From the NCBI GenBank assembly GCA_037379345.1, contig CM074511.1:21018001-21082000 (forward strand): a stretch of 64,000 nt of DNA, given 5' to 3'. The DNA is from Perna viridis (Eukaryota). A model generated the notes under the pieces. It saw only the letters and a list, made by a program, of their open reading frames with translations, searched no databases and was not told where the DNA came from. Both the position numbers and the translations under genes were made by a program. Below are positions 640-57,648 of this stretch, piece after piece (position 1 is the first letter of the stretch; every line of letters begins with the position of its first letter).

Positions 640-801
640 GTTATTCACATGGAGGAAGCTTCTGAACCTAAAAAGAAGATTTCAACCACATCGCTTCCAC
701 CCGAATACACGGCGGTTGAAAAAAAGAAAGCAAAGAAACCAACCAACACGTGGATGCCTCATCACAATGAAGTTAGACCGTTTAATACAAGCACAAAATA
801 G
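640..801 (+). CDS. Gene A, terminal exon of a Sushi-TM family member (upstream exons lie outside the window)
   Basis: Acceptor ttttgtaattcag| at 639, phase 0. Open frame VIHMEEASEPKKK...KKKAKKPTNTWMPHHNEVRPFNTSTK-TAG ends in the family C-terminal motif. Confidence 0.85.
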   Translation, partial: VIHMEEASEPKKKISTTSLPPEYTAVEKKKAKKPTNTWMPHHNEVRPFNTSTK

Positions 802-2899
802 AATAATTCCAATGCTTTTTCAACAAGTTTGCTTGTTTTTTTAGTGTTTCACGTCATTTGAATTTTGTCATTATTTTTCTTCGCCGGTTTAGGTTATTTA
901 AGCAATCAATTGTTCATATTTATTTTATTAATTCGAAAAGTAATTTTGGTTTCAATGTTGATATTGTTTTGTCTAATTCCACGCCAATCTTTGAAAATGT
1001 AGGTGGTATGTCCAATTATTGTTTATATTAATTTGATGGTAATTTTAGTTAAAAGTTGTCAATTTTGTCTAATGATATGTAAATTTTTAATGAGAAAAAC
1101 AGCTTGTTTCGTGTTTTTTTATTCTGTTTAGTCTGTGATTTGAGATAGATCTAATCATTGAATCTTCTTAGATAAAAATGAATATAATATTTTAATGAAA
1201 TAAAAGTCATCAATGATTGGATTAAAAAAGTATTGTTCCCATATGGATTCACTCAAGAAAATGTAACCACTTAAATAACGACATCTTAAGCAAAAATGTT
1301 TCAAACAAACGAATTTAAAATTATAAAAAACGGAAGGTCACTAAAAGATTCCAACAGATCACCACCCGAGTAAACTTTTCTTCAACATATAGTCAAACAG
1401 GATGCTGTCGCTGCAGTCTGAAATGAAATTCTACTACACGACATACCTATATAAAATTTGTATCAAATATATCTATTGGCTTTTGATAAGTGGATGAAAA
1501 GCGAAAAACGACACACGGAAGGACAAATACCATGGTCACTGTACAGCTCTTGTATTTAAAGCGGTGTATAAACGTAGGGGTTTGTGTCATGGCAGGTAGA
1601 ACTTGCAGAGAAAAGGAGTAAAACATGGACAATGTGAATTAGTGTTTAGTCAAATTGTTATTTTCCATCAATCCCACAAGTAAAATAAATTGTCAGATAC
1701 TATGCACTTTGTCACCAATTTGCAAAAATCTTTATTATAAATAAACATATGATAGAAACCTTAAAATATATACGAATGCTTTGTGCAGGTGGTACACACT
1801 GCGTCTCAAAAATTAACATTCCATGTTCTCGAAAAAAAGATATTGAGACAAAACTTTAGCAAAGTAAAGTGGTTGCATAAAGTCTGAGACCTTGGCTCAG
1901 ATCTTTTCTGTACATACATTTGAATGTAAGTTACACATAAAAAAAATGATATAACAGAATTTACATATGATAGAAACGTACTACTCTGTTCTATCTTTTT
2001 TGTTTAACGTCATTTACAATGTAATGTATTATAGGACATGAACAAACCTTGGTTTGTATTGTATCGAGTCGAGAATTAATATATAGGCAACAATCCGTGG
2101 AGAGCTATGTAACCAAACTCAGATCCGTCTTTCAAACTCTTAACAAACTAATCGCCAACTTTTTTAGATATGCTGCGAGCTTGGCGAGGAAGACATCCGT
2201 CAATTTGAAGTCTGGTTTGACAATGCCGGGAATGAAACCCATGATCTGCCCCCTCAAGCCGTGCTCCCTTGTAGGAGACCATCGAAGCGATTAGTTTAAA
2301 TTGAAGTGATGAAACTATTTGTATCGGTCTTGAATGGGTCTTAAAGTAAAATAGCTATACAAAACACAATTTGCATAGAAATCTCAGAAATAAAAACATG
2401 AAAAATTGGAAACAATGGTGGGAATGGAAATAAGGGGAATTTTTATCAAGGTATTTTGATGACTGAAAATATGATTTTGTGGAGAAAAAAACATAAATGG
2501 TAGAAATACAGACCTGGTGGAAAAGATGGGATAAAATAACATTATAAATGCAATGTTGTGCTCATATTTTTAGTCATTAATGTTCATGCAAACTTATTTA
2601 ATAGTAATCCATCACATGCATTTCGGTTTTCTTTCTATTTTGTGGGGATGGAGGGGTGGGGGTCCAGGAATTAAAAGTATAATTTTCATTGAAAAAAATC
2701 GTTGTATACGCAATTTCTCTCAGACTTAAATTATAATGTCTAAAGGTATATCACAAACCATTTATCCATTTGAGTAAGTTTATTTCGTTAACTTAATTTA
2801 TCACGACAGGGAACATATTGCACACAACTACTTGCTCATATTTTCCGTGTGTGTAGAACAACATGAGCATCTAACTTTTTCACCTTTTACCTTCTTAAA

Positions 2900-4175
2900 A
2901 CATTTAAATGGATACACTGAACGATCCACGAGTCCATGATGACGACCATAAAACTTCTGTAGTGATGACTTCAATCTTGTAGCAACATAACCCTGTTCCA
3001 GAAGCCAAGTTGTTAGAAGTCTAGCGCGATAAAAAAAGGTCAGCGTAGTAACTGCAAGCTCTGGCATACCCTAAGAGTTGTCATGTGAAAACTCTATACG
3101 CAGGTGCTGACAGGATGTTGCCACAGATGAGAGGAAAGTTGACAATTCTGAATGAGAAGTCATCACGTTTGTCGTAAAATTTAGTTAATAATTTTCCTTT
3201 ACCATCGATTTGTAGGTGTAGGTCAAGTGACATCACAGTGTCCGTAGTATCCTATGTCTCAAGTACTTTGGGGTAGATGGATGGGCTGTATCAAATACCC
3301 GAAACGATGATTGTTTAACGAAAATACATCATCTATATAGCGGAAACTGAGATTAAAGGATCTCGCTAAATGATGTTCTTTCTTTCGGATCAGATCAACC
3401 ATGAAGTCAGTCTCATAAGAGTGAAGGAATAGGTCAGCAAGTAGAGGAGCACAATTCGTTCACATTGGAATGCCGACCGTTTGTTGAAAAACGCGTCCAC
3501 CACAGTGAACAAATATGTTGTCAATCAAACATTCCAGCATTTCGAAAACATCTTCAGTCTATATTTTGAAGATGATTTGGAATTATGTTATATAAAGTAT
3601 GAGGAATCTCTACCAAGAACTATATATTTGTATCTAGGTGTACCATCTTTTTTGGAGAAACAACCATGTACAATATTTTTTAGTCGGGAATGAACTGAGT
3701 ATGAGGATAATAAGTATAAAGTGTTGAAAAATCATAGCTTTTAATGCTATTATATTCTGATAATAATCTTGAATTGAGGGTCACCAGAATGTCTTTCATC
3801 TTTTTTCAGGACTCACATTGAATTAATACCACTACGGGAGTAACAAGTGTTGTTGTAGGACTGGAGACTCTCTTTGACAGCTGTGAGTGTAGAAGTTAAA
3901 ACTTCTGAAAGAGGTTTCATTGGTGGTACATTTTGCAGATCCAGCTATGTAGTGTGTTTGTTTCTATTCTTGTTGAGCTTTGGAATCCAGTACAAAGACA
4001 GAAAATCACAATCATTGTCTTTGGTAGAGAGACCAAAAGGGGATAGCACGAATTTATGGTTTTCCACTATCTCTTCTTTGGAAAGTGTAGTGGCAGTATA
4101 GGTCTTATTAATGTAGCGGATAAAAACACTATCTAAGACCTCGTCTAAAACCAGTGTGTCAATACCATGAGAACT
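2900..4175 (-). mobile_element. Decayed Penelope-like retroelement RT
   Basis: Frameshifted RT pieces (LYWIPKL, TNCAPLLADLFL, RYIDD, KFYGRHH), near-identical to 22152-22751. Confidence 0.85.
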
Positions 4176-4570
4176 TGTCAAAAGTTATTCTTTTCTATTA
4201 TCTATGTGTTTGATAACACTTTTGTTTGTAGATTTTAATGGTAATTTTTAAACTAATGAAATGATACGTTTTTACTCAGTCACTCTATCAAAAACATAAT
4301 TCATCACTTCTTATGTTATAAATGTGCATCTCCAGTTTTGTATCATATACAACTTTTTATTTATATGCATGTTTTATGTTGTATACACTTTTATGCAGCA
4401 CAAATGGGATACTACATGTACATTCTGTTTTGGTCAGATTACTGAGTATAAGGGTCTTTTTCCCAATGTGTCACAGGGAATGTTGTACAATCCTACTTAC
4501 TTCCTTATTTCCTTGAACAAGGACTAAATTAATTTTAGTATAAAATTATTATTTTCTCTCACAATTTAAT

Positions 4571-4725
4571 TAAGGAATGTAACTTATATCTGAATGTATT
4601 ATCTTGTACAAAGAACTTAGGTTCGATTTACGTAGAATAAACCGCGAAGCGATTTATGTCCTGCCTAAATCGGACCAAAGTTCGTTAAACAAGGTAATAT
4701 ATTCAGATATTAGTTACATTCCTTA
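4571..4725. mobile_element. Fold-back (palindromic) MITE-like element
   Basis: taaggaatgtaac...tatctgaat at the left end pairs with attcagata...gttacattcctta at the right end. Imperfect symmetry continues to the centre cgcgaagcg. Confidence 0.65.
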
Positions 4726-6329: not shown

Positions 6330-7056
6330 GACCCCGTGCGGGTCCGGGTGTAATACAATAGGCTCATAGCAGCGCCAAGCTCGTTGAGGAAAGCGACTAA
6401 ATAGTGTTTAGAATCCTGGTGGTGGAATGGGGTACCCCTGGCATGCTTCATGCTGGGGTTGTCAGGCTCTGGTGGTGGAATGGGGTACCTCTGGCATGCT
6501 TCATGCTGGGGTTGTCAGGCCCTGGTGGTGGAATGGGGTACCCCTGGCAAGCTACATGCTGGGGTTGTCAGGCAATGGTGGTGGAATGGGGTATCCCTGG
6601 CATGCTACATGCTGGGGTTGTCAGGCCCTGGTGGTGGAGTGGGGTACCCCTGACATGCTTCATGCTGGGGTTGTCAGGCCCTGGTAGTGGCATGGGGTAC
6701 CCCTTGCATGCTTCATGCTGGGGTGTCAGGCCATAATACGTAAAACCTGACCGCAGACCATAGTGGTGCAACGTGTTGGTTAAGATGCCACGTTCCTCGC
6801 ACATTAAAGAACCCTTCTCTGGTATTCGATAGGATTAAGAACCCTTGGTTGCCCCTAACGGAGGCTTAATTATCCGTCCCTACATCCTCTCCCTATTTCC
6901 AGTGGCAATCAAAATTTGTCGACCGTATAAACCTTGTTTCCTATCCCATTTTTCATTTTTTCATCAATTCATGTTCATTTTATCATCCATTTCATGTTCA
7001 TCGCGCGGATGTAGCTGATATATTGCTGCTTGGGCGTTAAACCATAACAATCAATC
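6330..7056 (+). mobile_element. SINE-like interspersed repeat carrying an internal minisatellite
   Basis: Homologous to two copies at 30435-31245. Ends in attgctg...ggcgttaaac...caatcaatca. Confidence 0.7.
6415..6732. repeat. 53-bp tandem repeat, about 6 copies
   Basis: Unit cctggtggtggaatggggtacccctggcatgcttcatgctggggttgtcaggc. Confidence 0.95.
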
Positions 7057-7296
7057 AGACGAAACTGAAATATTTGCGAGTTTTAATCAAATGTTCATAG
7101 TATTTACATTTTTGCTTATTACTATAATTCATTAAAATCAATTTTATTTTTTCTGTGAGTGGTTTATTTTACAATTGATTTTTACAACCTTTCTTATGGT
7201 ATGCTCACACTGTTTTCATTAAAATAAATAATAACTTATTTTAAAAAACACATGAGGCACGAGAATTGTTTTACTTTTGAATAGCTTGATATTACA

Positions 7297-7513
7297 ATGA
7301 TGAACTGTGGTGACCCCCCAGCTTTGTCTGCAGCAACGTATGTAGTCGTGCGCAATGTTGTAACTTACACATGTAACCAAGGTTATAAAATGGTTGGCGA
7401 TGCAGATAAGGTGACTTGCCAAGCAGAAAACTGGGTTGGTACGAAGCCGGAATGCCAATTTCAAGAAAATAGTGCAAAAATCTATAACCTGACAAACGCT
7501 CATGATGCAGAAG
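7297..7513 (+). CDS. Gene B exon 1: Sushi/CCP domain
   Basis: MMNCGDPP...YTCNQGYKMVG...TC...W...PEC has the CCP pattern of 4 Cys plus Trp. Phase-1 donor gaag|gtactt. Confidence 0.88.
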
Positions 7514-8184
7514 GTACTTTTAACATTTAATACTGTGAAAGAACTATTAATCAAAGGTATTAAATTTTGTGATTTGTCTTAATTTTCTTATTTTGTTAAT
7601 TCTTCGTTTCTTTTAAACAGTATAGTTTCCGTTAGAAGTTAGAATCTCTAATAAAATCGCAACACAAAATTCACAAGACTGTTGCCCAACGAATAATTCA
7701 TATATAAATCAGTTTTAGTGGAGTCCGAGTTGCTGATTTACTTATGTTGATTTGTATGTTTTATTTTAATTATTTTTTCTTTGTTTTGTGTGTCTGTTTT
7801 CTATGGCTGGTCTTTGTTCCTGGATTACGTTCTTTTGATATCCGCTATAATCTTTGTTCCCTCGATTATTTTTTCAGTGTTGATTGGGCATCCAAATCAA
7901 TGAAATATTTCGTTAAATATTTTTATTTGATTCTTCAAATGTAATGTGGCGACTGAAATAATGAGCAAAACTGTATTATAATGTAAACTATTTCTAATAT
8001 TGTGATATAACTTAACATCTTACTCCATTACACATTACATGCTACAAGAACAGCTTTGTTATTTAAAAGGCTATTTTAAGAATAAGTAAGAAAGGATTAT
8101 TTAATAATTTTACATTTTTTAAATGAGAAAATAGCTTTTCATCATTTCGTTTTTAAATCATAACTTTTCAATTATATTTTACAG

Positions 8185-8281
8185 TACCTTATTGGTTGTT
8201 GTACTTGTTTGCTAGTGTAGCAGTTTTTGCGATAATATTGTCTGTGTGCGGCATTGTTTACATTTGTCTGAATTGTCATGG
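8185..8281 (+). CDS. Gene B exon 2: transmembrane helix
   Basis: ttttacag| ... |gtatgt, 97 nt, phase 1 to 2. Encodes VPYWLLYLFASVAVFAIILSVCGIVYICLNCHG. Confidence 0.88.
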
Positions 8282-9133: not shown

Positions 9134-9743
9134 ATGTATACACACAGAACCAGGTAACTGGGAAACAAAGATAGGGCAAAGGTCCTGTTTTGTTCTTATT
9201 TAATAACCAACAACCGCCTCATTGCTAATATGATGTCCAATCGGAACTCATCAGCCTTTCTAGTTACACCGAATAAAAACCTCGGAGGCACTAGGCGAAA
9301 GAATCTGTCCGGAATTTTGACCGATCCGATTCAATTATTGTAGCTTTACTAGTTGAAATTTTTACCTTTACAATTTTTCCAAGCTCCTCGCTACGAGCCA
9401 AAATTCCTGACTGAGTTATTACTCTTGTGATATTTACCAATTTTGTTAGCGCCACCTGGTGGATAGAACTACTTTGAGGTGCGTATGACTATAGTTCCGG
9501 CAATTTTTTTAAGAAGAAATTCTCCTTTCTGCATCCGAGATTATTTTTAGGAAAGCGGAAATGGCTGAGCAGTTGCGATTAATATGATGTCAAGTAGAGG
9601 GAAACTGTGAAATTGAAAAAAAAAAAAGACTTCATGATGTCTACCTAAAACTTAAGAAGTGTTGTCTTAGTAGTGTGACAAAAATTGTTCCAATAAATTA
9701 TTATGAGAAGTTTAGAAGTATCTTCTAAGTATTGTTTATTTAG

Positions 9744-9882
9744 TTGTTTGCCTTTCCTTTGGTGGCTACGTGAAGATGACACCTCCCTAACCTGTCAAAA
9801 AAATAATCAGGTTGATGAAGAAACGAGCAAAGAACAAAAAAGTATAACGTTCACTGATCAAACATATAGATCTGGACACGAG
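9744..9882 (+). CDS. Gene B exon 3: cytoplasmic linker
   Basis: tttatttag| ... gag|gtgagt, 139 nt, phase 2 to 0. Encodes CLPFLWWLREDD...TDQTYRSGHE. Confidence 0.8.
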
Positions 9883-10127: not shown

Positions 10128-10283
10128 TTAATGGTTGAGGAGAGGGAGACGAATGCTGAAAATAAGTCAGTGACCAGATTTTATCACCTACGGCCAGAGA
10201 AACTCCGAAAGAAAGCAAAGGCCATTGAGGTTTGGATGCCACACAGCCATGAAATCAGAAAAATTAATACAAGCACAAAGTAA
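10128..10283 (+). CDS. Gene B exon 4 (terminal); spliced product about 202 aa
   Basis: ttcttatatctag|, phase 0. Encodes LMVEERE...RKKAKAIEVWMPHSHEIRKINTSTK-TAA. AATAAA near 10383. Confidence 0.85.
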   Translation, partial: LMVEERETNAENKSVTRFYHLRPEKLRKKAKAIEVWMPHSHEIRKINTSTK

Positions 10284-12173: not shown

Positions 12174-12375
12174 ATGACTACGTGTCCTGCACAGGCACCA
12201 GCTATTTCTGGCGGATTTAGTACTGTTGTCGGCGATGATGCAACATACACTTGCAATTTTGGATTTAAGATGTCCGGAAGTCCAAACATAGTATGCTCAG
12301 AAGGAGCTTGGGTTGGACCGTTTCCAGAATGTATCCTGATAAATTCCGACAGCACTTATGTATTAGATTTAATGA
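12174..12375 (+). CDS. Gene C exon 1: Sushi/CCP domain
   Basis: MTTCPAQAP...YTCNFGFKMSGSPNIVC...WVGPFPEC. Two possible phase-1 donors, after 12375 (gtgaga) or after 12381 (gtaggt). Confidence 0.85.
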
Positions 12376-12825
12376 GTGAGAGTAGGTATCTTAGACGCAA
12401 GTGATCCATGTTTTATTTTTTTTTATCAGAGTATACAGGCATAAAAGTAATTATATATATATATATACTGTAATTTGTCATCGAATTATTTATCTAACTA
12501 TATAAATATATCTAAAAAAAAAAAAAAAAACAAATCCGCATACCATCGAAGAATATCAAATATCAATTTTCTGCTACCTTCTCTGTTGTTTTTCAAATAA
12601 AACAGGCTTAAAGATACTGTTCATGTTGTTAAAAATTCAAATGAAATTCTTTTCTTTTATCATTTGTCAAATTTTACTTTTTTCGTCAAGTACTTTTGTT
12701 TTGTTTTTTTTTTATGTTTTGTTTTGTTTTGTTTTTTTTTTTTTTGTTGTTGATTTGTTTTTTTTTGTGTTTTTTTTTGTTTTGCCTCTAATATATTACT
12801 GATAGAAAAATATATTTTGTTACAG

Positions 12826-12922
12826 TGCCCCTTTGGATGATAATACTGATAGCTTTAGTAACTGCTCTGGTTATTCTGGCTTTGTGTTGTTGTGTTATAG
12901 GCATGGTTTGGAGGATGTGTAG
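12826..12922 (+). CDS. Gene C exon 2: transmembrane helix
   Basis: ttttgttacag| ... ag|gtaatc, 97 nt (same length as gene B). Encodes PLWMIILIALVTALVILALCCCVIGMVWRMCR. Confidence 0.88.
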
Positions 12923-14663: not shown

Positions 14664-14876
14664 GTAGAGACACAAACAAAAAGCTGGGCAATGGTTCCAA
14701 AGTTTTTCCGTCAGATGGAGACTAATTGTCGACAGATTTGGCCAAAAACACACTCGGTGACCCCTGTGCGTAATTTACTTTTGATAGACCGGAAGGAGAA
14801 GAAACAAGCAACAAAACCTAAAATGTGGATGCCACACCGGCACAATGTTAGAAACATCAATACTAGTACGAAGTGA
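14664..14876 (+). CDS. Gene C exon 4 (terminal); spliced product about 222 aa
   Basis: ttttgtcatttaag|, phase 0. Encodes VETQTKSW...KKQATKPKMWMPHRHNVRNINTSTK-TGA. Alternative phase-1 acceptor at 14787. Confidence 0.8.
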   Translation, partial: VETQTKSWAMVPKFFRQMETNCRQIWPKTHSVTPVRNLLLIDRKEKKQATKPKMWMPHRHNVRNINTSTK

Positions 14877-15253
14877 ATTTAGTTCGACATGCATATTAAA
14901 ATTCATTTGTAGTGTTTGTTATTCCTGCATGAGTTCGACACCTACACAAATAAATATAAGTTTTTAGATAACAAGAAAGTCTTCTGAACAAGGACACTGC
15001 TTAAGCGATAACCCCTATGTAAATCAATAGTCAGTTATAAGAACTAACGTTTGTAAACAAATATATTCACTTTTCTTTAATATTTGCTTTTAACATTGTT
15101 ACGTCTTTAATTCAAGGAAACCAATGAATTATTGATAAAATAAACAATAGAAAAATCAATTTTAAATATCTGTGACTGAAACGCCTCATATTTTGCCTCA
15201 ATTAATCGCGTTTATAGTGAACACCCAAGTGAAGTAATTCGTCTTCATAAAAA

Positions 15254-15449
15254 ATGGCGTGTTCTACAGCACCGGAAAATATAGCCAATGGATACTTTGT
15301 GGGTGCTAAAGCGTCATATAGTGCTGGTGACCAGGTCCATTATGTTTGCTCTCAAAATTACGTCATGTCCGGTAACCCAACTGTAACTTGTTCAGCCGGA
15401 GTATGGGTAGGAGGATACCCTTCTTGTAGTCTCTCGTTTCTTTCGAATG
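15254..15449 (+). CDS. Gene D exon 1: Sushi/CCP domain
   Basis: aaaaATG context. MACSTAPENIANG...YVCSQNYVMSGNPTVTC...WVGGYPSC. Phase-1 donor aatg|gtaaga. Confidence 0.9.
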
Positions 15450-15667: not shown

Positions 15668-15761
15668 CATATTTCTACATTATTGGAGCATTGGTACTCT
15701 TTATACTGGTTGTAGCTTTGGCAATTTTGTGTGTTTTCTGTTGCAAGTTTTGTTGTCGAAG
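15668..15761 (+). CDS. Gene D exon 2: transmembrane helix plus Cys cluster
   Basis: atttcag| ... ag|gtgagt, 94 nt, phase 1 to 2. Encodes AYFYIIGALVLFILVVALAILCVFCCKFCCR. Confidence 0.9.
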
Positions 15762-16206: not shown

Positions 16207-16651
16207 CAATAGGGTACAAGATGATGATTTTGAGGAGAGGACTGGGTGTTGTAAATGTTGCCGATCGCGTGATCAAGAAGTACGGGACGACAACGAAGAA
16301 ACAAAGAAGAAACACACAAGCAAGCCAAAAGGAAAATCCTCTTCCAGAAACACAAAAAGTACCTCTAATAACAAGAAAACAATAACAGGGAAGAAATCGA
16401 AAACTACTTCCGGTCAAAAGAAGAACGATATCAATAAGGCAAATAAGTCAAAGAAGTCATTGTCGAGGTCAAAAGGTTATAATGTCAAAAAGAAGAACGC
16501 CAATGTTAAAATGAAACCTGCAACAAAGAAGACAACAGAAACAAGCGAGAAAGAAGATTCGACATTGTCTGCTAGAAAAGTTGCAGTAGAGGTTCAAGCT
16601 TGGAAACCATTTACTAATCCAATGCGGAACATTAACACGAGTACAAAATAA
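16207..16651 (+). CDS. Gene D exon 3 (terminal, Lys-rich tail); spliced product about 244 aa
   Basis: ttttgtcag|, phase 2. Uninterrupted frame NRVQDDDFEERTGCCKCCR...AWKPFTNPMRNINTSTK-TAA. AATAAA at about 16659. Confidence 0.88.
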
Positions 16652-16743
16652 AATCTTAATTAATAAACGTTTAAAATGTTCATTTTAGAGGTAATCAAGT
16701 TAGTTTGATATTACAGTATATATAATTAAAGAAGCTTTGAAAC

Positions 16744-21839: not shown

Positions 21840-23030
21840 CTGTTATCTGAATATAATAGCATTAAAACCTATGATTTTTCAACACTGTATACTTCTATTT
21901 CCCATACTCAGTTAAAATCCCGACTTAAAAACATTATACATCGTTGTCTTTTTTTTTTTCCAAAAAAGATGGTACACCTAGATACAAATATATAGTTCTT
22001 GGTAGAGATTCCTCATACTTTGTAAGAAATAATTCCAAATCATCTTCCAAATATACAGAGGAAGATGTTTACAAAGTGCTGGAATTTTTAATCGACAACA
22101 TATTTGTCCAGTGTGGTGGACGTGTTTTTTCTATAAACGGTCGGCATTCCAATGGGAACAAATTGTGCTCCTTTACTTGCTGACCTATTCCTTCACTCTT
22201 ATGAGGCTGCCTTTATAGCTGATCTGATCAGAAAGAAAGAATATCGTTTAGCTAGCTCTTTCAATCTTAGTTTCCGCTATATAGATGACGTATTATCTTT
22301 AAACAATCCTAATTTCGGGGATTTGATACATCGCATTTACCCAAAAGCACTTGAGATAAAGGGTACTACAGACACTGTGAAGTCAGCCTCATATCTTGAC
22401 CTACACTTAGAAATCCATGGTATAGGAAAACTATTGACCAAACTTTACGACAAACGTGAGGACTTTTTATTCAGAATTGTCAACTTTCCTTTCATCTGTG
22501 GCAACATCCCTTCGGCACCTGCGTATGGAGTGTTCATATCACAACTCATACGTTATGCCAGAGCTTGCCGAAACTACGCAGACTTTTTGTATCGCGCTAA
22601 AACTCTAACAAATAGGCTTCTGGAACAGGGTTATGATGCTACAAGATTGAAGTCATCACTACAAAAGTTTTATGGTCGTCATCATGAACTCGTGGATCGT
22701 TATGGTGTATCCATCTGCACCATGAAAACTGATTTATTCAACGGGTCATAGTTTTCCTTTCCTCGTTTGTCTACCTCGGACTTGACTTTTTATGAGCAAC
22801 TCGGCGGGTGTTTCTAGAAAAGCAGATGACGCTTACCCTACCGGTGCACCTGGTCCATGTTTCTGTTTTTAGTGGAGTCCGAGTTGCTCATTTGCTTTTG
22901 TTACTTTGTATGTATGGTTTTAGTTACTTTATGTTCTTTGTTGTGTATGTCTGTTTTCCATGTCTGGTCTTTGTCCCTGGATTACATTCTTTTGATTACC
23001 GCTATAACCTTGGTTCCCTTGATTACTCTT
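21840..23030 (+). mobile_element. Penelope-like retroelement, 3' part (RT core, thumb, 3' UTR)
   Basis: IKTYDFSTLYT...PMGTNCAPLLADLFL...FRYIDDVLSLNN. ORF 22152-22751 is intact but frameshifted upstream. Confidence 0.9.
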
Positions 23031-23159
23031 TTAAATTCAGTCAACTCTTAGTAGTCACCAGAGTTTTGTGGCATATTGGTGTAAAATTTTCAATATCATG
23101 TCACAATGTTCTAGGTCACCTTTGGTGGAAAGCGTTATTTTTATGAAAATTGACAAAAA

Positions 23160-24500
23160 ATGTATTTCATGAATCTATCAAGTCAAGTATGAAGCTTTGC
23201 TGGTCCAGTTGTTGGCTACCTGGAGGAAAAATGTTCTCTGAGTTAATAGGCCCCATACCAGATCTTTTCAAACGATACATAGACGATGTCTTTGGGGTGA
23301 CCAACAATGAAGAACATGATTTGTTGGGTTTCTTTTCGTACCATCCAGCCATCAAATACACCTCCAACATCACCTTAGAGAGCCTTCCGTTCTTTGACAT
23401 CAATTGTAAAATTCAAGATGAAAATAAATTCAACCTCAATTTTTTACAAACCCATAGAAGCACATTTTTACTTAGATGATCAGTCCTGTCACCCTCAGTA
23501 ATACAAAAATACCATTCCAAGTCACAATTACTGAGACTTCGCATTATTTTCAGCGATGACCACGATTCCAGGGCTCAATATAACACGATAAAATCTGTTT
23601 TTATCAAGAGAGGATATCCGAACAAAGTTCTGGATCGGGCGATCACGTCAGTTGACAAGTGACCGTGTTCCTTTGGTCTTGAAATATCAACCGCACAATG
23701 TTGCAATCCAGAACATCTTGATTCACCACTTTAAATCCATACTTCTCAGAGACAAATATATGTCGTCAGTATTCAACGATTCGCTTCCAATTACTGCCTA
23801 AAGAAAGGGAAAGAGTCTGAAAGCGCACCTTTTTACGAGTTCTTTGAAGAGTGCAACTAGACGCCCGCCTGCCAGTTACAAAGGCACACTGCACTGTAAG
23901 CGAATACGCCGTTCGACAAGATCTTTTACTTGGGAAACTGATGAGGTCGTCGGACCAGCCAACGTCTTGTCTACGCTGTGGTTTGCAAACGCTGTAAAAT
24001 GGTTTACATGGGCAAGAGTTTGGCTGATCGTTTTGTAGAACGCAAACAAAGCGTCATCGGTGGAAAGGATTGTCCAGTTCGGGAAACATTTTTGGGAGGC
24101 AAACCACATAGTTGACGACATGAAAGTAACTGTCCTTTTGAATACGTGTTCAGGCGAAAAACAACGAAAGTTCCTAGAACAGCGTATCGTCAGCTTTCTT
24201 GGGACTGCCCATCCCTTTGGAATGAATGTCAATACCCGCATCATTTACTCACCATAACCCGGTTTTCAACTGCTTTTCGTTCTAGAAATTTTCATCTTGA
24301 ACTTTACGCATATTTTATAATGATCAAGCTCCATTTTGAGGGCACCTTGTCTCTGTGGTAGGGATTGTCAGCTTTCATCTCAATACTTTTTGCCCCTAAC
24401 GAAGGCCGGAAGTCCGAAAATTTGGGCTCATATTTTTCAATATTTTTATGTTTTATTCATATTTTATTTGTATTTAGTTCCTTTTAAGCGTGGCTATTGT
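23160..24500 (+). mobile_element. Decayed Penelope element of a second family (RT plus GIY-YIG-type C-terminus)
   Basis: FKRYIDDVFGV and LPFFDI RT motifs. C-terminus HF...RKFLEQRIVSFLGTAHPFGMNV is typical of PLE GIY-YIG domains. Hammerhead-like motif downstream. Confidence 0.75.
24392..24427 (+). ncRNA. Degenerate minimal hammerhead ribozyme (PLE-associated)
   Basis: gccc-CTAACGA-a-ggcc-ggaa-gtcc-GAAA-attt-gggc. Stem I, the core boxes and stem II are recognisable; CUGANGA carries a G to A change. Confidence 0.5.
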
Positions 24501-27100: not shown

Positions 27101-27293
27101 ATGAGCTGTACATCAATATCTATCCCTAACGGATATACCCACTCTGGAGTGAATCTATTCAATGTGAATGATACTGTAACTTACACGTGCAACACATTTT
27201 ATACCCTTTCTGGAAATGCCGTTGCTTCCTGTTTAAATGTTAATGGGACATGGTCCAGTATACCGTCCTGCAAGCTTGTCTTCTACGATAATG
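27101..27293 (+). CDS. Locus E, Sushi exon V1
   Basis: aacATG context. MSCTSISIPNGY...YTCNTFYTLSGNAVASC...WSSIPSC. 193 nt, phase-1 donor aatg|gtatgt. Confidence 0.88.
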
Positions 27294-29419: not shown

Positions 29420-30430
29420 ACTACGTAAAAACAGGAAACAAAGGTGATCTTCATGCACAAAACACATACAAATTCATTTATTTATAACAATTTACCTCTT
29501 GAAACTGTAACAGATTATACATATCTGGGTTTAACCATTAAATATAATGGAAATTTCAATTTAGCAATAGATATTTTGATTGACAAAGCTAGAAAAGCCT
29601 ATTTCAAAATTAAGAAAGTTATGGGATTAAACAACCCATGTAGACTTTTAGAGAAACTTTTTGACTCTTTGTTTTCTCCAATTATGCTTTACTGTAGTGA
29701 AATTTGGGGAAATGAATTACTTTTGAAGAATACATCAAATCACCTTGAAACAGTACATACTAAATTTACTACTTGGAGTCAACTGTAAATCTTACATTTA
29801 TGCTTGTCTTGCAGAGCTATGTAGATTTTCCCTGCAATGTAAAATCAATATTTCAATCATTGGATTTCTAAATCATATTTATTCCAATAATACTACTCTT
29901 TTATACCATTTTTATATTACAAAGGATTCAAATACTTGGACAACTAATAACAAAAGGTTACTAGATACCTTGGGCTTTGCCTATTTAATGAATAACCCAA
30001 GTGCACTAAAAATAAAGTTACCGATGATTAAACAAAGAATATCTGATCGATATTTACAAGAACAAAATTCATTTATCAGCAATTCTTCAAAATTATCTTT
30101 TTATAGAAAACTTTATAGGTCTGGAACTAGATCAAATTATATAGATGTTTTGTCTAAACTGGCCGAGATATCTATGATATCCAAAATAAAAATTAGCTCT
30201 CATCAGCTTATGATTGAGAGAGGAAGACACCACAATATTCCAAAAGACAATATAATATGCCCCGTATGCTATATTAACATTAAAGACGATGAACATATCT
30301 TATTTGAGTGTGATTTATACAACACACTAAGAGGTGAACTAACACTGAACTTCTTTATATAAAAACTTTGATACGTTTAATATTATAAAAAAAAACTAAG
30401 TATATTGTTTAACAGTAAAAATCCTAAATT
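29420..30430 (+). mobile_element. Decayed LINE ORF2 3' fragment
   Basis: YTYLGL...LFDSLFSPIMLYCSEIWG...SSHQLMIERGR...ICPVC...DEHILFEC, frameshifted near 29770. Confidence 0.85.
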
Positions 30431-30434: not shown

Positions 30435-30935
30435 TTTGTTTGTTTGTTAGGGTTTAACGTCCGAGCAGCTATATTTCAGCTATATTCAGACAATGAACAT
30501 GAAATGGATGATAAAATGAACATGAAATGAAAAAAAAAGGATAGGTCACAAGGATAGTAGAGTCGACAAATTTTGATTGCCACTGGAAAAAGGGGGGATG
30601 GGTAACGTCGGGCAATTTAGCCTCCTGTGGCGGAGCACAAAGGTTCCTACTCCTATCGAATACCACAGCTGGGTTCTTTAACGTGCGGGGAACGTGGCAT
30701 CTTTCCCAACACGGTGCACCACTATGATTTGCGGTCAGGTTTTCCGTATTATAGCCTGACAACCCCAGCATGTAACACGCCAGGGGTACCCCATTCCACC
30801 ACCTGGGGCACACATCCCAGTTGCTCTGTGGGCAGAACGCCTAGCCCCCGGCTAGGTTTCTGAGCACTATTTAGTCGCCTTATACGACAAGCTTAGCGCT
30901 GCTGCAGGCCTATTCTTTTAACACCCGGACCTGCA
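30435..30935 (-). mobile_element. SINE-like repeat (same family as 6330-7056)
   Basis: Reverse-complement homology over its whole length. Contains about one copy of the 53-bp unit and a (caaa)n tail. Confidence 0.75.
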
Positions 30936-30937
30936 AA

Positions 30938-31245
30938 CCATAATGGTGCACCATGTTGGGAAAGATGCCACGTTCCTCGCACGTTAAAGAAACCCTACTG
31001 TGGTATTCTCCCGGAGTAGGAACCATAGGGCTCCGCTACAGGAGGCTAAATTGCGCGACTCTACCCACCTTTCCCTATTTCCAGTGGCAATCAAAATTTG
31101 TCGAACCCATTGTCCTTGTGTCCCATCCCTTTTTCATTTCATCATCATTTCATGTTCATTTTATCATCAATTTCATGTTCATCGTCTGAATATAGCTGAA
31201 ATATTGCTGCTCGGACGTTAAACCCCAACAAAAAAACAAACAAAA
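30938..31245 (+). mobile_element. 5'-truncated SINE-like copy, inverted relative to its neighbour
   Basis: gatgccacgttcctcgcacgttaaaga...ctgctcggacgttaaacc followed by an (aaac)n tail. Confidence 0.75.
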
Positions 31246-32979
31246 CCACTTATTGTAACTGTGTTAGAGCTAAATAAAATATTTGTATTTGTATTTGCAC
31301 AATGTAGCGAACAGAATTAAAATACAGATACATAAAAACTGAAGACAATGAAAAATAGACATCACACAAAAAAACGAAACCACTTAAAATATGAATTCTC
31401 CCAAAAACGGAAGTAACATCAGGAATAGCATCCTGTGCTCCGGAATAGCAAGCGTACCCTGCATCGCAAGCGGCTCCCTCACATTGCAAACTAACCAAAT
31501 CTTGTAAACGTCAAGTTCGATGGTTTGCCTATCCGATAAGACGTAAAATCAAACTAAAGATATATTTATCTTGTCTCATCTGTGAGAAATAACCTTTAAA
31601 TCGGTCAACCAAATTTCAATGTCCACCATAAAACTAGTTTTGATATCTTATATAATATAATGATTGCTGTACAAAAGAAATTCACATGCTTTATAGTAAC
31701 AGAACAACTGTGAAATGTATACTCTATAGGTTGGGGATGTTGGTATATCGCCATCCTGACTGTAGACGGTAACAGTTGGAAAGTAAAATGTATCATATCT
31801 TTAGGTCCCCTGTTTTTTTATAGAACTTTGGTGAATATGATCCAGCACAGCCATGTAGAAGCGGTGTACAATTTTGTAAAAGCAAAAAATTAATATACTG
31901 TTACATTATCAGAAATAGTACCGATGTACGTTAGATCAGACCTATGATTGTTAATTATGGTCTCCTTAGGTAAAGGGCTACTGAATATATTGGGTTATTA
32001 CGTGTTCATGGTTTTTCAAGACCAATCCGAACTAAACATTCAATATCTTTTTTTTTTCGAACGATATTTTTAGGAGCTTTGTTTTCTTGTCCGACGCATT
32101 TGTCACGAAGGTCTAACAAAGTATTTTTACCTAAAGATCGTCAGAATAATATCTAATTTAAAATTTAAATATTTTTCATATATATATTTTCGTACATTAC
32201 TGGACAGGCGGTAATTTCTATATTCTCAGCTGCGCGTTGTAGCAGAAGAAGCAAAACTCGTACAAATCAAAATGAGCTTCTCTGGATTTATATCAATCAG
32301 ACATGTCAGTTGTGTTACTATATCTCATTACATAAAATCAGTCCGTTATGTTATAGACTTTTTTATTCTTCTCAACATTTATTACCTTTTAACTACACTT
32401 TATTTGAATTTAACAAATCTTTAAATTGAAACGTTACTCTCTTATTTTACAAATTTCTTGATATTGCAAATAAACACAGACAGTATTTGAATCCTTTAGA
32501 CCATTTATCTTTTGTATGAAAAGTTAAATATCTTCGATACTTTGCCAAGCGTCATGTGGATTTCCCCAAATACTCAAGTTTATTCAATTGCTTAAATCCG
32601 TGATCTATCTTAAATAGTAATTGGAGAAATAAATTATAAATACAAATCGCATTGAGTGTTTATATTTAAGTGAAAATAGCATTTTCCATAGCACTTGAAA
32701 AAATGTATGAACAGGATGGCAGCCTTAAAATATATAGTTGTCAATATATGTTGCATTAGGGCGAAGTATTGTGTTACTTGGAACGAAGTGATTACTTAAC
32801 GATAAATACTTATTTTATAGCTGAACGGTGTTTTGATAATGAGGCTACTTTAAGCCACTAATTAATATCATATAAGCTTTTTTAGGTCCATTTACAAATT
32901 ATCTTACCTCAGATAGGACATAGAATTGTTTCAAGCAACATAGGAATATAAATATACGTGTTGTCTTGATAAGAGAAAG

Positions 32980-33200
32980 AGTAATCTAGAGAACCAAGGT
33001 TATAGCGGTAATCAAAAAGAATGTAATCCAGGGACAAAGACCAGACATGGTCAATAGACATACATAACAAAGAACATAAAGTAACTAAAATTAAGTACAT
33101 ACAAAGTAACAAAAGCAAATGCGCAACTCGGACTCCAATTAAAACTGGGAGCATGGACCAGGTGCACCGGTAGAGTAAACGTCCTCTGCTTTTCTAGCAT
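32980..33200 (-). mobile_element. Solo 3' UTR segment of the Penelope-like family
   Basis: Matches 22810-23030 in reverse complement. Similar pieces at about 7710-7870, 38835-39045 and 55070-55322. Confidence 0.8.
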
Positions 33201-33565: not shown

Positions 33566-33613
<48 letters not shown>

Positions 33614-36242: not shown

Positions 36243-36435
36243 ATGAGTTGTACTGCTACTTCTATTTCGAACGGTTATATCTTGTCATCGACGCCGATAT
36301 ATCAAATCAACGAAACAGCCACATATTACTGTAATACATTTTATTACTTATCTGGTAATCCCGTTGCCACGTGTCTGGATCGCTATGGAAACTGGACATC
36401 TATCCCATCATGCAGTTTTGCTGCTACAAAAAATG
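36243..36435 (+). CDS. Locus E, Sushi exon V2
   Basis: atcATG context with an in-frame TAA at 36219. MSCTATSISNGY...YYCNTFYYLSGNPVATC...WTSIPSC. 193 nt, phase-1 donor aatg|gtcagt. Confidence 0.88.
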
Positions 36436-41199: not shown

Positions 41200-42238
41200 T
41201 CCCTGCAGTACCAGCATATGGAGTGTTCATATCACAACTCATATGTTTTGCCAGAGCTTGCCTAAACTACGCAGACTTTTTGTATCGCGCTAGAACTCTT
41301 AACAAATAAGCTTCTGGAACAGGGTTATGATGCTACAAGATTGAAGTCATCACTACAGAAGTTTTATGGTCGTCATCATGAACTCGTGGATCGTTATGGT
41401 GTATCCATCTGCACCATGAAAACTGATTTATTCAACGGGTCATAGTTTTCCTTTCCTCGTTTGTCTACCTCGGACTTGACTTTTTACGAGCAACTCGGCG
41501 GGTGTTACTAGAAAAGCAGAGGACGCTTACCCTACCGGTTCACCTGGCCCATGCTCTCAGTTTTTAGTGGAGTCCAAGTTGATCATTTGCTTTTGTTACT
41601 TTGTATGTATGATTTTAGTTACTTTATGTTCTTTGTTGTGTATGTCTGTTTTCCATGTCTGGTCTTTGTCCCTGGATTACATTCTTTTGATTACCGCTAT
41701 AACTTGGTTCCCATGATTACTCTTTCAATGCGTCATAGTTGTCCTTTCCTCGTTTGTCTACCCCGGACTAGAAAACCAGAGGACGCTTACACTACCGGTG
41801 CACCTGGTCCATGCTCCCAGTTTTTAGTGGAGTCTGAGTTACTCATTTGCTTTTCTTGCTTTGTGTGTGTGATTTTTGTTGCTTTGTGTTCTTGTGTATG
41901 TCTGTTTTCCATGTCTGGTCTTTGTCCCTGGATTACATTCTTTTGATTACCGCTATAACTTGGTTCCCATGATTACTCTTTCAATGCGTCATAGTTGTCC
42001 CTTCCTCGTTTGTCTACCCCGGACTAGAAAACCAGAGGACGCTTACACTACCGGTGCACCTGGTCCATGCTCCCAGTTTTTAGTGGAGTCTGAGTTACTC
42101 ATTTGCTTTTCTTGCTTGGTGTGTGTGATTTTTGTTGCTTTGTGTTCTTGTGTATGTCTGTTTTCCTTGTCTGGTCTTTGTTCCTGGATTATATTCTTTT
42201 GGTTACCGTTATAACCTTGGTTCCCTTGATTACTCTTA
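41200..42238 (+). mobile_element. Penelope-like 3' fragment with three tandem 3' UTR units
   Basis: RT C-terminus (PAYGVFISQL...KFYGRHHELVDRYG), then three successive units of about 255-285 bp, each ending gattactctt. Confidence 0.88.
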
Positions 42239-44855: not shown

Positions 44856-45048
44856 ATGACGACATGTACTCTACAGGCTTTAAGTAATGGATATGCAATA
44901 TCTTCGAAGAATCTTTTCAACGTGAATGACACAGTCACTTTTTCTTGTAACCAGTTTTACACGATATCTGGAAACCCGGTGGTTACATGTTTGGACACTG
45001 GTTCATGGTCAACGCTACCATCGTGTAAATTTTATACTACAGATAATG
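44856..45048 (+). CDS. Locus E, Sushi exon V3
   Basis: aaaATG context with an in-frame TAG at 44835. MTTCTLQALSNGY...FSCNQFYTISGNPVVTC...WSTLPSC. 193 nt, phase-1 donor aatg|gtgaga. Confidence 0.88.
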
Positions 45049-52987: not shown

Positions 52988-54340
52988 GTAATCAAGGGAA
53001 CCAAGGTTATAGCGGTAATCAAAAGAATGCAATCCAGGGACAAAGACCAGACATGGAAAACAGACATATACAATAAAGAACATAAAGTACCTAAAATAAT
53101 ACATACAAAGTAACAAAAGCAAATGAGCAACTCGGACTCCACTAAAAACTGGGAGCATGGACCAGGTGCACCGGTAGGGTAAGCGTCCTCTGCTTTTCTA
53201 GTAACACCCGCCGAGTTGCTCATAAAAAGTCAAGTCCGGGTGGACAATCGATGAAAGGAAAACTATGACCCGCTGAATAAATTAGTTTTCATGATGCAGA
53301 TGGGTACACCATAACGATCCACGAGTTCATGATGACGACCATAAAACTTCTGTAGCAACATAACCCTGTTCCAGAAGCTATTTGTTAGAGTTCTAGTGCG
53401 ATACAAAAAGTGTGCGTAGTTTCGGCAAGCTCTGGCATAACATATGAGTTGTGATATGAACACTCCATACGCAGGTGCAGAAGGGACGTTGACAATTCTG
53501 AATGAAAAGTCATCACGTTGGTCGTAAAGTTTGGTCAATAGTTTTCCTTTACCATCGATTTCTAAGTTTTGGTCAAGATATGACTTCACAGTGTCTGTAG
53601 TATCCTTTATCTCAAGTTCTTTTAGGTAGATGCAATGTATCAAATCCCCGAAATTAGGATTGTTTAAAGATAATACGTCATCTATATAGCGGAAACTCAG
53701 ATTGAAGGATCTAGCCAAACGATATTCTTTCTTTCTGATCAGATCAGCTATAAAGTCAGCCTCATAAGAGTGAAGGAATAGGTCAGCAAGTAAAGGAGCA
53801 CAATTTGTTCCCATTAGAATGCCGACCGTTTGTTGAAAAACACGTCCACTGCTATTATTTTCTACGTCTACCTCTGATAATAAACATTGGACGTAAAACG
53901 TTTTGCAGACAAAAACAATGTTGTTTTGGGCTTTGACTGCTGGTACGACAACATATTTTTCATGTATAGTAGACATTTTTTTTCCTACATCGGGGTCTTT
54001 AAAAATTGATGTAGCCTTGGCACTCATTGGCCTACTTAACACTTTCATTCGTTTCAAAATTAAAGACGATCTGCTGTCAGGTTCGGGCCTATTTATACTT
54101 TTTAAACCTTTTTATAGAAGAGTAAAGGAATAGGTTAGCAAGTAAAGGAGCACAATTTGTTCCCATTGGAATGCCGACCGTTTGATGGAAAACACGTCCA
54201 CCACACTGGACAAATATGTTGTCGATTAAAAATTCCAGCATTTTGTAAACATCTTCCTCTGTATATTTGGAAGATGAATTGGAATTGTTTCTTACAAAGT
54301 ATGAGGAATCTCTACCAAGAATTATATATTTGTATCTAGG
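52988..54340 (-). mobile_element. Rearranged Penelope-like retroelement
   Basis: ORF 53263-54057 carries MGTNCAPLLADLFL and FRYIDD but has an internal deletion. The segment around MGTNCAP recurs at 54120-54340. Confidence 0.88.
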
Positions 54341-55069: not shown

Positions 55070-55322
55070 CTTTCGTCTACCCTGGACTTGACTTTTTATG
55101 AGCAACTCGGCGGGTGTTTCTAGAAAAGCAGAGGACGCTTACTTTACCTGGTCCATGCTCCCAGTTTTTAGTGGAGTTGCTCGTTTGCTTTTGTTACTTT
55201 GTATGCATTATTTTAGTTACTTTATGCTCTTTGTTGTGTATGTCTGTTTTCCATGTCTGGTCTTTATCCCTGGATTACATTCTATTTGTTACCGCTAGAA
55301 CCTTGGTTCCCTTGATTACTCT
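55070..55322 (+). mobile_element. Solo 3' UTR segment of the Penelope-like family
   Basis: Near-identical to 22770-23030. Confidence 0.8.
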
Positions 55323-55591
55323 TCCTTCAAAGTGTCAATATCACGTATAATCTATAAAGTTTTATCTCAAAAGTGCAACAACTTAATGAAAACTATAACT
55401 GATATGTGGTATGTAACAAACTGAGAAATAAGATGGGCAAATAACAACCTTTAATACTCAAAAAATCAGTCTGTCTGGTGCTTTTCATTATCTTTTGGTC
55501 TTTGGAAGTAAAATTCGTTACACTTTTGTCTTGTAATGGTTTTTAATTCAAGATGTTACTTTATTTATTACTATCATTGATTTATTTTCAG

Positions 55592-55682
55592 TATGGTTTT
55601 GGATGACAGTTGGTCTTGCATCACTCTTGGCTCTGGTATTGTTACTGATACTACTGTTATTCCTTATAAGATACTGTTTTTG
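55592..55682 (+). CDS. Locus E transmembrane exon (candidate shared/constant exon)
   Basis: tttattttcag| ... tg|gttagt, 91 nt, phase 1 to 2. Encodes VWFWMTVGLASLLALVLLLILLLFLIRYCFC. Confidence 0.88.
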
Positions 55683-56454
55683 GTTAGTAACAATTAAAAC
55701 AGTAAATATTTACTTTTATTTCTATGTTTCTTACCCAATGGTGGTTGTCGATTTTAATAAATTATCAAAATTAATTTGTGATTACAGGTACATAAACTTT
55801 ACTTTATGACTTTAATTTTGTAATTTGGTAAAAGACATTGCTTAACTTTTACGCTTAGAATCCCTAAAAAGAAGCCCAAATCTCACATATTTTCATTTCG
55901 TGTCTCGCTCCGAATACATTTATTACATATTCCGATACATCTGTAAATATTGTTGAGACCGTTTTGACCACCAGTATGTTTACACACATTATTATTCTTT
56001 ATCGATTCTACGGACGAAAATTAACAACCTCGTTGGCTTGTTAAAAAATTAGATATAAGAATTTGAAAAAGTAATGTTAAACATTGTTTTTTACGCGGGA
56101 AAATAACATATATCTGTTTGTTTACCCAATCAGCTGGTGGTGCGAGTAAATAATGCTACAATAAGGATAATCCTATCTAAGGAAATACTGTCTGTAGTTT
56201 TCCAAATCGAAAGGGAAATACTACTGGTTTTGCAAAGGTGAAAAATAAAGTAAAATTTTGACATTTGTTGGGATAAGTTTGGGAAAATGTAGTTCCGTGA
56301 TTTTGAAGGCACCCTGTGTAAATATGAAAATATATTGGGAAAAAATATTTTTAAAAAATGTAATAACATTGATTTTCCAACAAAAGGTTTACCTTCAGTA
56401 GAAAAGTTGAATCCGGTTAGATGTATTGTGAAATAGATTTTCAATCTTTTTTAG

Positions 56455-56851
56455 CCACAAACGAAAAAGCCGGGTTTCAGAATTTATAGAAAGTCAAGAC
56501 AGATATGGAGATTCTTGTGGACCTTGTTGTGGTTTCGTAGACTACAAGGGATGCTGTTCTCTCTTCGGTTGTTGTGGATTCTTTGGATGTTGTGGTGGTT
56601 TTTGTGGTTGTTGCCGATGTTGCCGAGAGTTTCCAGGGGACACTGGTCCGGAATCATCAAACCATAATAATGTCAACCAACAGGGCAATAAACCAAGGAA
56701 AAAGAAAGTGTCCGTCAGGCAAACACAGACTTCACCGACGCCTACAGATTCGTCATATATACACGACGAAAAGAAGAAAATAGCAAAGGTCCTTAATGCT
56801 TGGATGCCACATTCACATACTGTACGAAACATAAACACCAGCACAAAATGA
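56455..56851 (+). CDS. Locus E tail exon T1 (Cys/Gly-rich); V+TM+T1 gives about 226 aa
   Basis: tcttttttag|, phase 2, matching the TM donor. Encodes HKRKSR...GPCCGFVDYKGCCSLFGCCGFFGCCGGFCGCCRCCR...RQTQT...AWMPHSHTVRNINTSTK-TGA. Confidence 0.88.
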
Positions 56852-57022
56852 ATTATGACAAAGAACAAACCAGAACAGAACTATTGCCCTGAACAAGTTA
56901 TAGTTCGAAAAAATTAATGTTAAAGTTTTATAGTAGTATGAAAACTATTAGCATCTCAACTTTTTCTAAATTTGAATATGATATGTTTATTTATCGCACC
57001 GCAGTCCATTTTTTACAGGATG

Positions 57023-57053
<31 letters not shown>

Positions 57054-57420
57054 TTCAAAATAATATAACTTATCTTCTCCTTTCATGGTTATTGGGCATT
57101 CTTCTCTTTTTGCTTCTGGCAATCTTTTTTTTTATGTATTTCATCAAAGTGAATGTCGCATCAAGAAATTACAGGTTCTTTAGTGTTTCGATCGATTATT
57201 TTTTATAAAATTTACAAATCTTCAAAAAGAACTACTTACGAAAATGTTAATCATAGAAACTTCCTGCTTTACGATAGTCTATTGAAGCATGCAATATTCT
57301 TACTTCGCTTTTTGTGCAACTTTTTTCTGGTTTCGGTTTACACACTCGTGTTATTTAACGCACCCTAGCTAGTTCCTAATGTGGTGTATAGTCACACTGT
57401 CTATTTCATTCTCGTTTCAG

Positions 57421-57648
57421 ATGGACGGGGTATATATTATTTCTAATAACATTGATTCTACACATATTGTAAAACAGAAACCGAAGAAAGTTCATACGTC
57501 TGCTACACAGACCTATCCCATGTCACGTGATTTAGAAAATTCATTTGTGACACAGGAAAAGGATAATAAGAAGAAAACCGCCAAAGTTTTAAAAGCTTGG
57601 ATGCCTCATACACACGATCTCCGAGCAATAAATACCAGCACGAAGTAA
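57421..57648 (+). CDS. Locus E second tail exon T2 (splice partner unresolved)
   Basis: Strong acceptor ctatttcattctcgtttcag|, phase 0. Encodes MDGVY...SATQTYP...KKTAKVLKAWMPHTHDLRAINTSTK-TAA. Confidence 0.75.
   Translation: MDGVYIISNNIDSTHIVKQKPKKVHTSATQTYPMSRDLENSFVTQEKDNKKKTAKVLKAWMPHTHDLRAINTSTK

Follow-up and report, generated by a model that had tools for sequence, protein, structure and literature searches.

A tandem cluster of genes for single-Sushi membrane proteins that share a conserved C-terminal peptide in Perna viridis

We analyzed a 64,000-nucleotide stretch of the Perna viridis genome (hereafter, the window; assembly GCA_037379345.1, contig CM074511.1, here C1, positions 21,018,001–21,082,000) in which a C-terminal peptide ending in Asn-Thr-Ser-Thr-Lys (NTSTK) is encoded repeatedly. 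The six tails found there belong to five neighboring tandem genes, designated A to E, for small membrane proteins with one Sushi domain; coordinates are window positions on the plus strand unless otherwise indicated. In a six-frame scan, NTSTK followed by a stop codon occurred six times, exclusively on the plus strand, with motifs starting at 751, 10233, 14826, 16601, 56801, and 57598 and a Trp placed 16 residues before the stop in each. A degenerate DNA pattern for W-x-P-x5-R-x-[IF]-N-T-S-T-K matched all six sites and no others in the window, and found no match in 100 dinucleotide-preserving shuffles of it. Every copy is preceded by a Lys-rich patch with a near-invariant A-K, and the stops are, in order along the window, TAG, TAA, TGA, TAA, TGA, and TAA. 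An earlier interpretation made from the letters alone (the sequence-only reading) had reported the six stop-terminated copies and the Lys-rich patches, and both were recovered where it had placed them. Its six copies represent five genes and not six, as the tails at 56801 and 57598 are splice alternatives of a single gene.

The five genes are assembled from a small set of recurring exon types; exons were searched singly, and full-length comparisons were made with database proteins. Six Sushi exons in the window match Pfam PF00084 (E-values of 7e-12 to 4e-9, 37–46 bits against a gathering cut-off of 20.7), and carry the four Cys and the conserved Trp of this domain. In all six, the ATG precedes the first Cys by one to three codons and is itself preceded, a few codons away, by an in-frame stop; a phase-1 donor comes shortly past the last Cys. 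Splice phases are consistent, with the Sushi exon leaving in phase 1, and the transmembrane (TM) exon entering in phase 1 and leaving in phase 2. Each of the four TM exons in the window encodes a Cys cluster at its end or is followed by one. The tail exon comes directly after the TM exon in genes D and E, and a small Cys exon between TM and tail restores phase 0 in gene A and probably in gene B.

Gene A enters the window with its terminal exon (640–801), which opens at an acceptor (...taattcag/GTT at 640) and carries the motif at 751–798 and the stop TAG at 799–801; the predicted protein P0013 is identical to 649–798. The window does not include the earlier exons of this gene (Sushi exons that encode signal peptides, one TM exon, and one Cys exon), which are found in the immediately upstream segment C1:21008001–21018000 (L013). 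In that segment, Sushi exons at 301–576, 4137–4454, and 7076–7408, each with its own signal peptide, are followed downstream by a single TM exon (9367–9463) and then the Cys exon (9796–9871). The middle Sushi exon is degenerate, without the last Trp and Cys, while the other two are intact. Because three Sushi exons precede one TM exon, alternative first exons may be in use in gene A as well.

The first coding exon of gene B (7297–7513, Pfam Sushi E-value 4.3e-10) has its ATG two codons before the first Sushi Cys, no signal peptide, and a phase-1 donor AAG/gtactt at 7514. It is followed by a TM exon at 8185–8281 (acceptor ttttacag/TA, phase-2 donor GG/gtatgt) and a terminal exon at 10128–10283 (motif 10233–10280, stop TAA). 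A middle cytoplasmic exon at 9744–9882 (phase 2 in, phase 0 out, donor GAG/gtgagt) is tentative, being placed by splice phases alone with no homologue alignment in support. Gene C comprises a Sushi first coding exon at 12174–12375 (ATG at 12174, phase-1 donor at 12376 or 12382, Pfam Sushi E-value 5.4e-10), a TM exon with a CCC cluster at approximately 12826–12916 (acceptor ttgttacag/TG, donor at 12917 or 12923), and a terminal exon at 14664–14876 (motif 14826–14873, stop TGA), with a related protein of 72 amino acids, P0024, aligning to 14664–14873. Gene D begins with a Sushi first coding exon at 15254–15449 (Pfam Sushi E-value 2.9e-11). No AG is found from the in-frame stop at 15248 to the first Cys codon of this exon, and therefore no signal-peptide exon could be joined to it in frame. 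The TM exon of gene D (15668–15761) ends in the Cys cluster CCKFCC at a donor AG/gtgagt, and its terminal exon (16207–16651) encodes CCKCC, a long Lys-rich tail, and the motif at 16601–16648 (stop TAA), here as the variant WKPF...NTSTK.

The remaining part of the cluster, 27101–57648, is one gene (gene E) with three alternative Sushi first exons, one TM exon, and two alternative terminal exons, because it contains the same parts as the predicted isoforms of Mytilus californianus LOC127707718 and is colinear with a transcript contig. Variable first exon 1 (27101–27293, own ATG, donor ATG/gtatgt) is orthologous to the isoform X2 first exon of Mytilus, variable first exon 2 (36243–36435) corresponds to that of isoform X3, and variable first exon 3 (44856–45048) is nearest to the first exon of isoforms X1 and X5. 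Each of the three thus has a different best Mytilus counterpart, with identities of 62% (in an alignment that extends past the exon), 84%, and 67%, respectively. The layout is that of variable first exons, i.e., first coding exons in tandem with their own ATGs, upstream in-frame stops, and donors of the same phase, spliced to shared downstream exons. The latter are a constant TM exon at 55592–55682 (acceptor ttttcag/TA, donor TG/gttagt) and a constant Cys-rich exon that includes terminal end A (56455–56851, motif 56801–56848, stop TGA). Within this exon, an internal alternative donor AAG/gtcctt at 56789, with its GT exactly after the A-K codons, bypasses motif A and joins alternative terminal exon B (57421–57648, acceptor tttcag/ATG, motif 57598–57645, stop TAA); both splice alternatives retain the motif. 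A hydrophobic open frame at 56942–57205 was considered as a second TM exon and rejected, as it aligns with none of the family proteins and is intronic, being located between alternative terminal exons A and B. A scan for shared words in the 500 nucleotides upstream of the Sushi start codons detected recent duplicates only, and no common element.

The Mytilus gene displays the same arrangement at the protein level. The differences among predicted isoforms X1–X5 of LOC127707718 are confined to residues 1–64 and to the end of the protein. Isoforms X1–X4 differ in residues 1–64 only, which correspond to the Sushi domain and come in three clearly different versions, plus a fourth that is one residue off one of these. 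Isoform X5 ends at the first NTSTK, and isoforms X1–X4 exit the exon just past E-K-K-K-I-A-K and gain 56 residues that end in the second NTSTK. The colinear transcript contig (Logan contig L015, from a related species) matches gene E exon 1, the TM exon, and tail A in that order, and its 3' untranslated part includes tail B in another frame.

We identified seven tails in total with a tail-profile search of the whole 723-Mb assembly, namely the six in the window and one on the minus strand at C1:10412823, 10.6 Mb from the window; this search returned nothing convincing beyond these seven copies, all of which are located behind Sushi and TM exons. The seventh copy belongs to a second locus (C1:10412823–10446011, minus strand), where five Sushi first exons of two sequence types are spread across 26 kb; in one of these exons, Leu takes the place of the conserved Trp. 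These are followed by one TM exon and then one Cys-rich tail exon, which includes a stretch of ~50 residues holding ~18 Cys. Orthologues of this locus were detected in Mytilus, Ostrea, Crassostrea, and Pinctada, and the two Mytilus counterparts (P0001 and P0002) differ from each other in the Sushi part only.

Comparison of the seven genomic copies indicates that strong selection acts on the tail peptide and that the motif is a real feature. At the W, P, R, N, T, S, T, and K codons, all eight of them invariant in residue, synonymous difference (pS) is saturated at 0.89 while non-synonymous difference (pN) is zero, from which we conclude that the selection is on the peptide, as the sequence-only reading had proposed from the differing codons and stops. 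Among the copies, the Arg codons AGA, CGG, and CGA represent both Arg families, and four different codons are used for the first Thr. Mean pairwise nucleotide identity is 66% inside the motif versus 31% over the 48 bases past the stop.

The same peptide characterizes a wider family of proteins. A HMMER profile of the last 36 residues, searched against 1.84 billion representative proteins, returned 65 clusters at E ≤ 0.001, all of ≤354 amino acids, and 98 of the 103 proteins fetched contain the motif. The family consensus reads [KR][KR]K-x-A-K-E-[VL]-x-x-W-M-P-H-S-[NH]-P-V-R-N-I-N-T-S-T-K-COOH, and the motif is the exact C-terminus in 92 of the 98 motif-bearing proteins. Of 74 distinct tails, 63 end in K, 9 in R, and 2 in Q; a penultimate Thr of the T-K type is present in all 74, and is preceded by Ser in 73. 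The W, R, N, and penultimate T were fixed by the pattern used to extract these tails, but were left free in the profile search, nearly all matches of which fit the pattern. The position of the motif at the exact C-terminus in nearly all of these proteins supports the view that it needs a free C-terminus.

Full-length members of the family all combine a single Sushi domain with one hydrophobic helix, juxtamembrane Cys residues, and 40–250 residues of low-complexity tail, and a Ser/Thr-rich stretch sometimes precedes the divergent Sushi domain. The sequence-only reading had spoken of diverse ectodomains, but these are not of diverse kinds: the ectodomain is a single Sushi in every full-length member, and the diversity is one of sequence. 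All 26 named species are Mollusca, with 16 bivalves from Pteriomorphia, Palaeoheterodonta, and Heterodonta, and 10 gastropods spanning Patella and Haliotis to Lymnaea and Plakobranchus. No cephalopod or non-mollusc was found in the protein profile search, in which unnamed metagenome and Logan entries carry no taxon; genomes of cephalopods and non-molluscs were not searched. The reading frame of the motif is the annotated end of the coding sequence in RefSeq models of many molluscs, which bears out the frame assumed in the sequence-only reading. Complete coding sequences also occur on short transcript contigs, e.g., 297 amino acids on a contig of 970 bases, and spliced mRNAs therefore exist in relatives.

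This family of bivalves and gastropods is uncharacterized, as had been suspected for its motif from the sequence alone. Its members are annotated as uncharacterized, hypothetical, or Sushi domain-containing proteins, along with one automatically named CSMD and two with an evidently wrong UniRef name. The tails and Cys-rich stretches had no match in Pfam, a PDB profile search provided no meaningful match to the tail and matched the Sushi part alone, weakly, to complement-control modules, and nothing above 0.8 was found in the ESM Atlas. In the open-access full-text literature, searches retrieved nothing relevant on the NTSTK motif, the family, the oyster locus, or alternative first exons in molluscs. 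When the full-length family alignment was used as query, the seven matches were dominated by unrelated Sushi proteins, and a region-restricted search with the tail only returned two candidates. Two further patterns were observed among the family proteins P0016, P0020, P0022, P0037, P0063, and P0067 and at 57421–57450 of the window: a second, weaker tail motif D/E-G-[VI]-Y-[FIL]-[VI]-P (a Y-x-x-P pattern), which many members contain, and a block F-P-R-R-[FY]-E-Y-D-E-x-G-R-R-[FY]-H common to a subgroup of bivalves.

An AlphaFold2 (AF2) model based on a 28-sequence family alignment displays a confident Sushi beta fold at residues 1–60 and one long helix at residues 61–99. The tail is disordered, with a predicted local distance difference test score (pLDDT) of 44–50 that rises up to 64 over the motif, the usual picture for a peptide that folds on a partner. 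Many members lack a signal peptide, their Sushi domain starting at residue 2–8, and starts of the M-x-C type are found in RefSeq models or predicted proteins from more than 10 species. The same cluster also encodes paralogues that do have a signal peptide, and a Ser/Thr-rich stretch may or may not accompany it. From the strongly basic, Cys-rich flank on the C-terminal side of the helix, the sequons in the Sushi domain, and the signal peptides of these paralogues, we infer an outside location for the Sushi domain and a cytosolic one for the tail. The six Sushi exons of the window encode no cleavable signal peptide ahead of the exoplasmic domain, which suggests type III insertion (an N-out signal anchor) for these proteins, and the juxtamembrane Cys cluster is probably palmitoylated.

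Taken together, these patterns lead us to favor, with somewhat more confidence than doubt, a role of the tail as a C-terminal docking peptide, which a conserved cytosolic protein would recognize via the free carboxylate; a docking or trafficking motif with a common cytoplasmic partner had also been proposed in the sequence-only reading. The Sushi domain at the extreme N-terminus would be exoplasmic, with the TM segment acting as an N-out signal anchor where the signal peptide is missing, and the helix is followed by the Cys cluster, a basic disordered tail of variable length, and then the invariant terminal peptide. The partner would recognize this peptide through its free C-terminus, the T-S-T-K end would probably be switched by phosphorylation, and many divergent Sushi ectodomains would thereby be coupled to one sorting or signaling route. 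As such, the motif appears to belong to a known category, the C-terminal linear motifs of single-pass receptors.

A broader proposal, which we put forward tentatively and consider unlikely as it stands, is that these genes form a receptor system specific to bivalves and gastropods, in which alternative Sushi exons and tandem paralogues would offer a choice of ectodomain per cell, in the manner of clustered protocadherins, and the NTSTK tail would be the common handle for one cytosolic reader of a new class of C-terminal recognition. Variable first exons spliced to constant exons are known from the clustered protocadherin and UGT1A loci. The mollusc genes are similar to these in having ectodomain exons in tandem, each with its own ATG, joined to shared exons (gene E has three such exons and the second locus five, in a layout conserved in Mytilus), but their variable exon is limited to a Sushi domain of 64 residues, their TM segment is in the constant exon, and their arrays are small. 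Variable Sushi first exons combined with constant exons constitute a receptor-diversifying layout, for which no description was found for these genes in the open-access papers searched.

If the terminal peptide docks a cytosolic protein, one candidate partner is 14-3-3, although we regard a 14-3-3 mode III ligand as improbable. Mode III ligands include TASK channels and the plant H+-ATPase, and the mollusc tails are similar to them in the register of Ser/Thr relative to the free carboxylate and in the upstream basic patches; they differ in lacking Arg at −3/−4 and in having a conserved block much longer than needed. Two intact intronless 14-3-3 genes are located on C12 (L020, 307–1059, plus strand, and L021, 238–984, minus strand), encoding 250 and 248 amino acids. 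Multi-exon 14-3-3 genes are found too, on C9 and C14. The minimal mode III pattern, pS/pT-x(1-2)-COOH (PMC12459269), formally fits, given that Ser/Thr is found at one or two positions from the carboxyl end.

Several points weigh against docking of the tail to a conserved cytosolic partner. The mode III pattern is a loose one, and the candidate phospho-site lacks the usual Arg at −3/−4, the invariant Arg being six residues before the penultimate Thr. The ~22 conserved residues exceed a typical linear motif. Expression and splicing are read from conserved splice sites together with the transcripts and models of related species, and the taxonomic range comes from a protein profile search.

Established short motifs do not account for the tail. 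A PDZ ligand of class I–III was rejected because none of the 74 distinct tails ends in a hydrophobic residue, the last position being K, R, or Q. KKxx/KxKxx COPI retrieval was rejected because positions −3, −4, and −5 (last residue = 0) are T, N, and I, with Lys at the last position only, and the sequence-only reading was thus right to set both aside. These signals are comparable to the mollusc tail in being recognized at the free C-terminus of membrane proteins, while their defining residues differ. Judged by eye, none of SH3 (PxxP), PxIxIT, RVxF, LIR, NPxY, YxxPhi, or WxxF fits the invariant positions.

As a long shot, the tail end may instead be a C-terminal degron or a terminal-Lys modification site that sets receptor half-life, rather than a docking site for an adaptor. 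Pathways for C-terminal degrons recognize the final few residues of a protein, and the confinement of the motif to the exact C-terminus, the restriction of the last residue to K, R, or Q, and the disorder of the tail are all in line with this possibility. However, the length of the conserved block is far above what known C-degrons need, and the known C-degron classes end in G, R, E, or A contexts, not T-K.

We give a similarly low chance to an intramolecular electrostatic or lipid-binding switch, in which the basic patch, Trp, and terminal peptide would lie on the inner leaflet, perhaps together with the Cys cluster and with no dedicated protein partner. The conserved [KR][KR]K-x-A-K patch does adjoin the invariant Trp, juxtamembrane Cys clusters are present, and the three terminal hydroxyl residues could bear phosphate. 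Yet charge and hydrophobicity alone leave the invariant Pro, His, and Asn and the exact order of NTSTK unexplained, and the distance between motif and membrane varies from ~40 to 250 residues.

That N-T-S is an N-glycosylation sequon on a luminal or extracellular C-terminus is very improbable and contradicted by the data: the Asn fifth from the end and the Ser two residues on are invariant or nearly so, but there is one hydrophobic helix only, with the sequon-bearing Sushi before it and the basic flank and Cys cluster after it, the signal-peptide paralogues place the Sushi outside, and a sequon would leave the invariant W, P, and R, both Thr, and the final K unexplained. Conservation at the nucleotide level (an RNA or regulatory 3' element) or an untranslated frame has practically no chance of being correct, with nothing found in its favor, and is likewise contradicted, as fixed residues with saturated synonymous sites, varied codons, three different stop codons, and the collapse of identity past the stop rule out a nucleotide-level element, and the RefSeq coding sequence ends and the intact frame in spliced transcript contigs speak against an untranslated one.

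Outside the motif, the overall build of these proteins is similar to that of vertebrate single-Sushi membrane proteins such as the interleukin-15 receptor alpha type, SUSD3, and SUSD6. These have one complement control protein (CCP)/Sushi domain, sometimes a Ser/Thr-rich stalk, one TM helix, and a short unstructured cytoplasmic tail. Unlike them, the mollusc proteins are often without a signal peptide, and have juxtamembrane Cys clusters and the NTSTK end. A second likeness is to synaptotagmin-1, a type III membrane protein with a palmitoylated juxtamembrane Cys cluster: both types start with a short exoplasmic domain that no cleavable signal peptide precedes, cross the membrane once, and have a Cys cluster adjoining the TM segment. 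In the mollusc proteins, for which topology and acylation are what we infer, the exoplasmic part is instead a disulphide-bonded Sushi domain, and C2 domains are absent.

A cytoplasmic peptide of 22 residues that is kept across bivalves and gastropods, while the remaining tail and the ectodomain drift, marks an interaction of enough importance to be worth seeking and provides a ready bait for its partner. The family has no functional name in any mollusc genome sampled, among them those of farmed oysters, mussels, scallops, and abalone. In addition, the presence of paralogues with a signal peptide and with a signal anchor in one cluster offers a natural experiment in membrane-protein topogenesis.

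Several repeated elements were also detected in the window. A G+C-rich tandem repeat of six copies with a period of 53 (6415–6732), open in all three frames, lies within an interspersed element (6380–7040) that recurs at 30454–31221 as an inverted pair with ~80% identity. A short interspersed repeat of ~170 bases is found in introns and spacers at 7710–7880, 22867–23031, 32975–33147 (minus strand), 41507–42237, and 52989–53147 (minus strand), and forms a tandem array of 2.8 copies with a period of 256 at 41.5–42.2 kb. Broken open frames at 21840–24254 and 29429–30359, located between genes D and E and between variable exons 1 and 2 of gene E, respectively, resemble decayed retroelements, one of them with a Y-I-D-D box typical of reverse transcriptases; neither had a Pfam match at E ≤ 0.01. 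Finally, a tandem repeat at 60163–60469, with six copies of period 49 (or a period of 148), adjoins retroelement-like frames at 60.9–62.4 kb.

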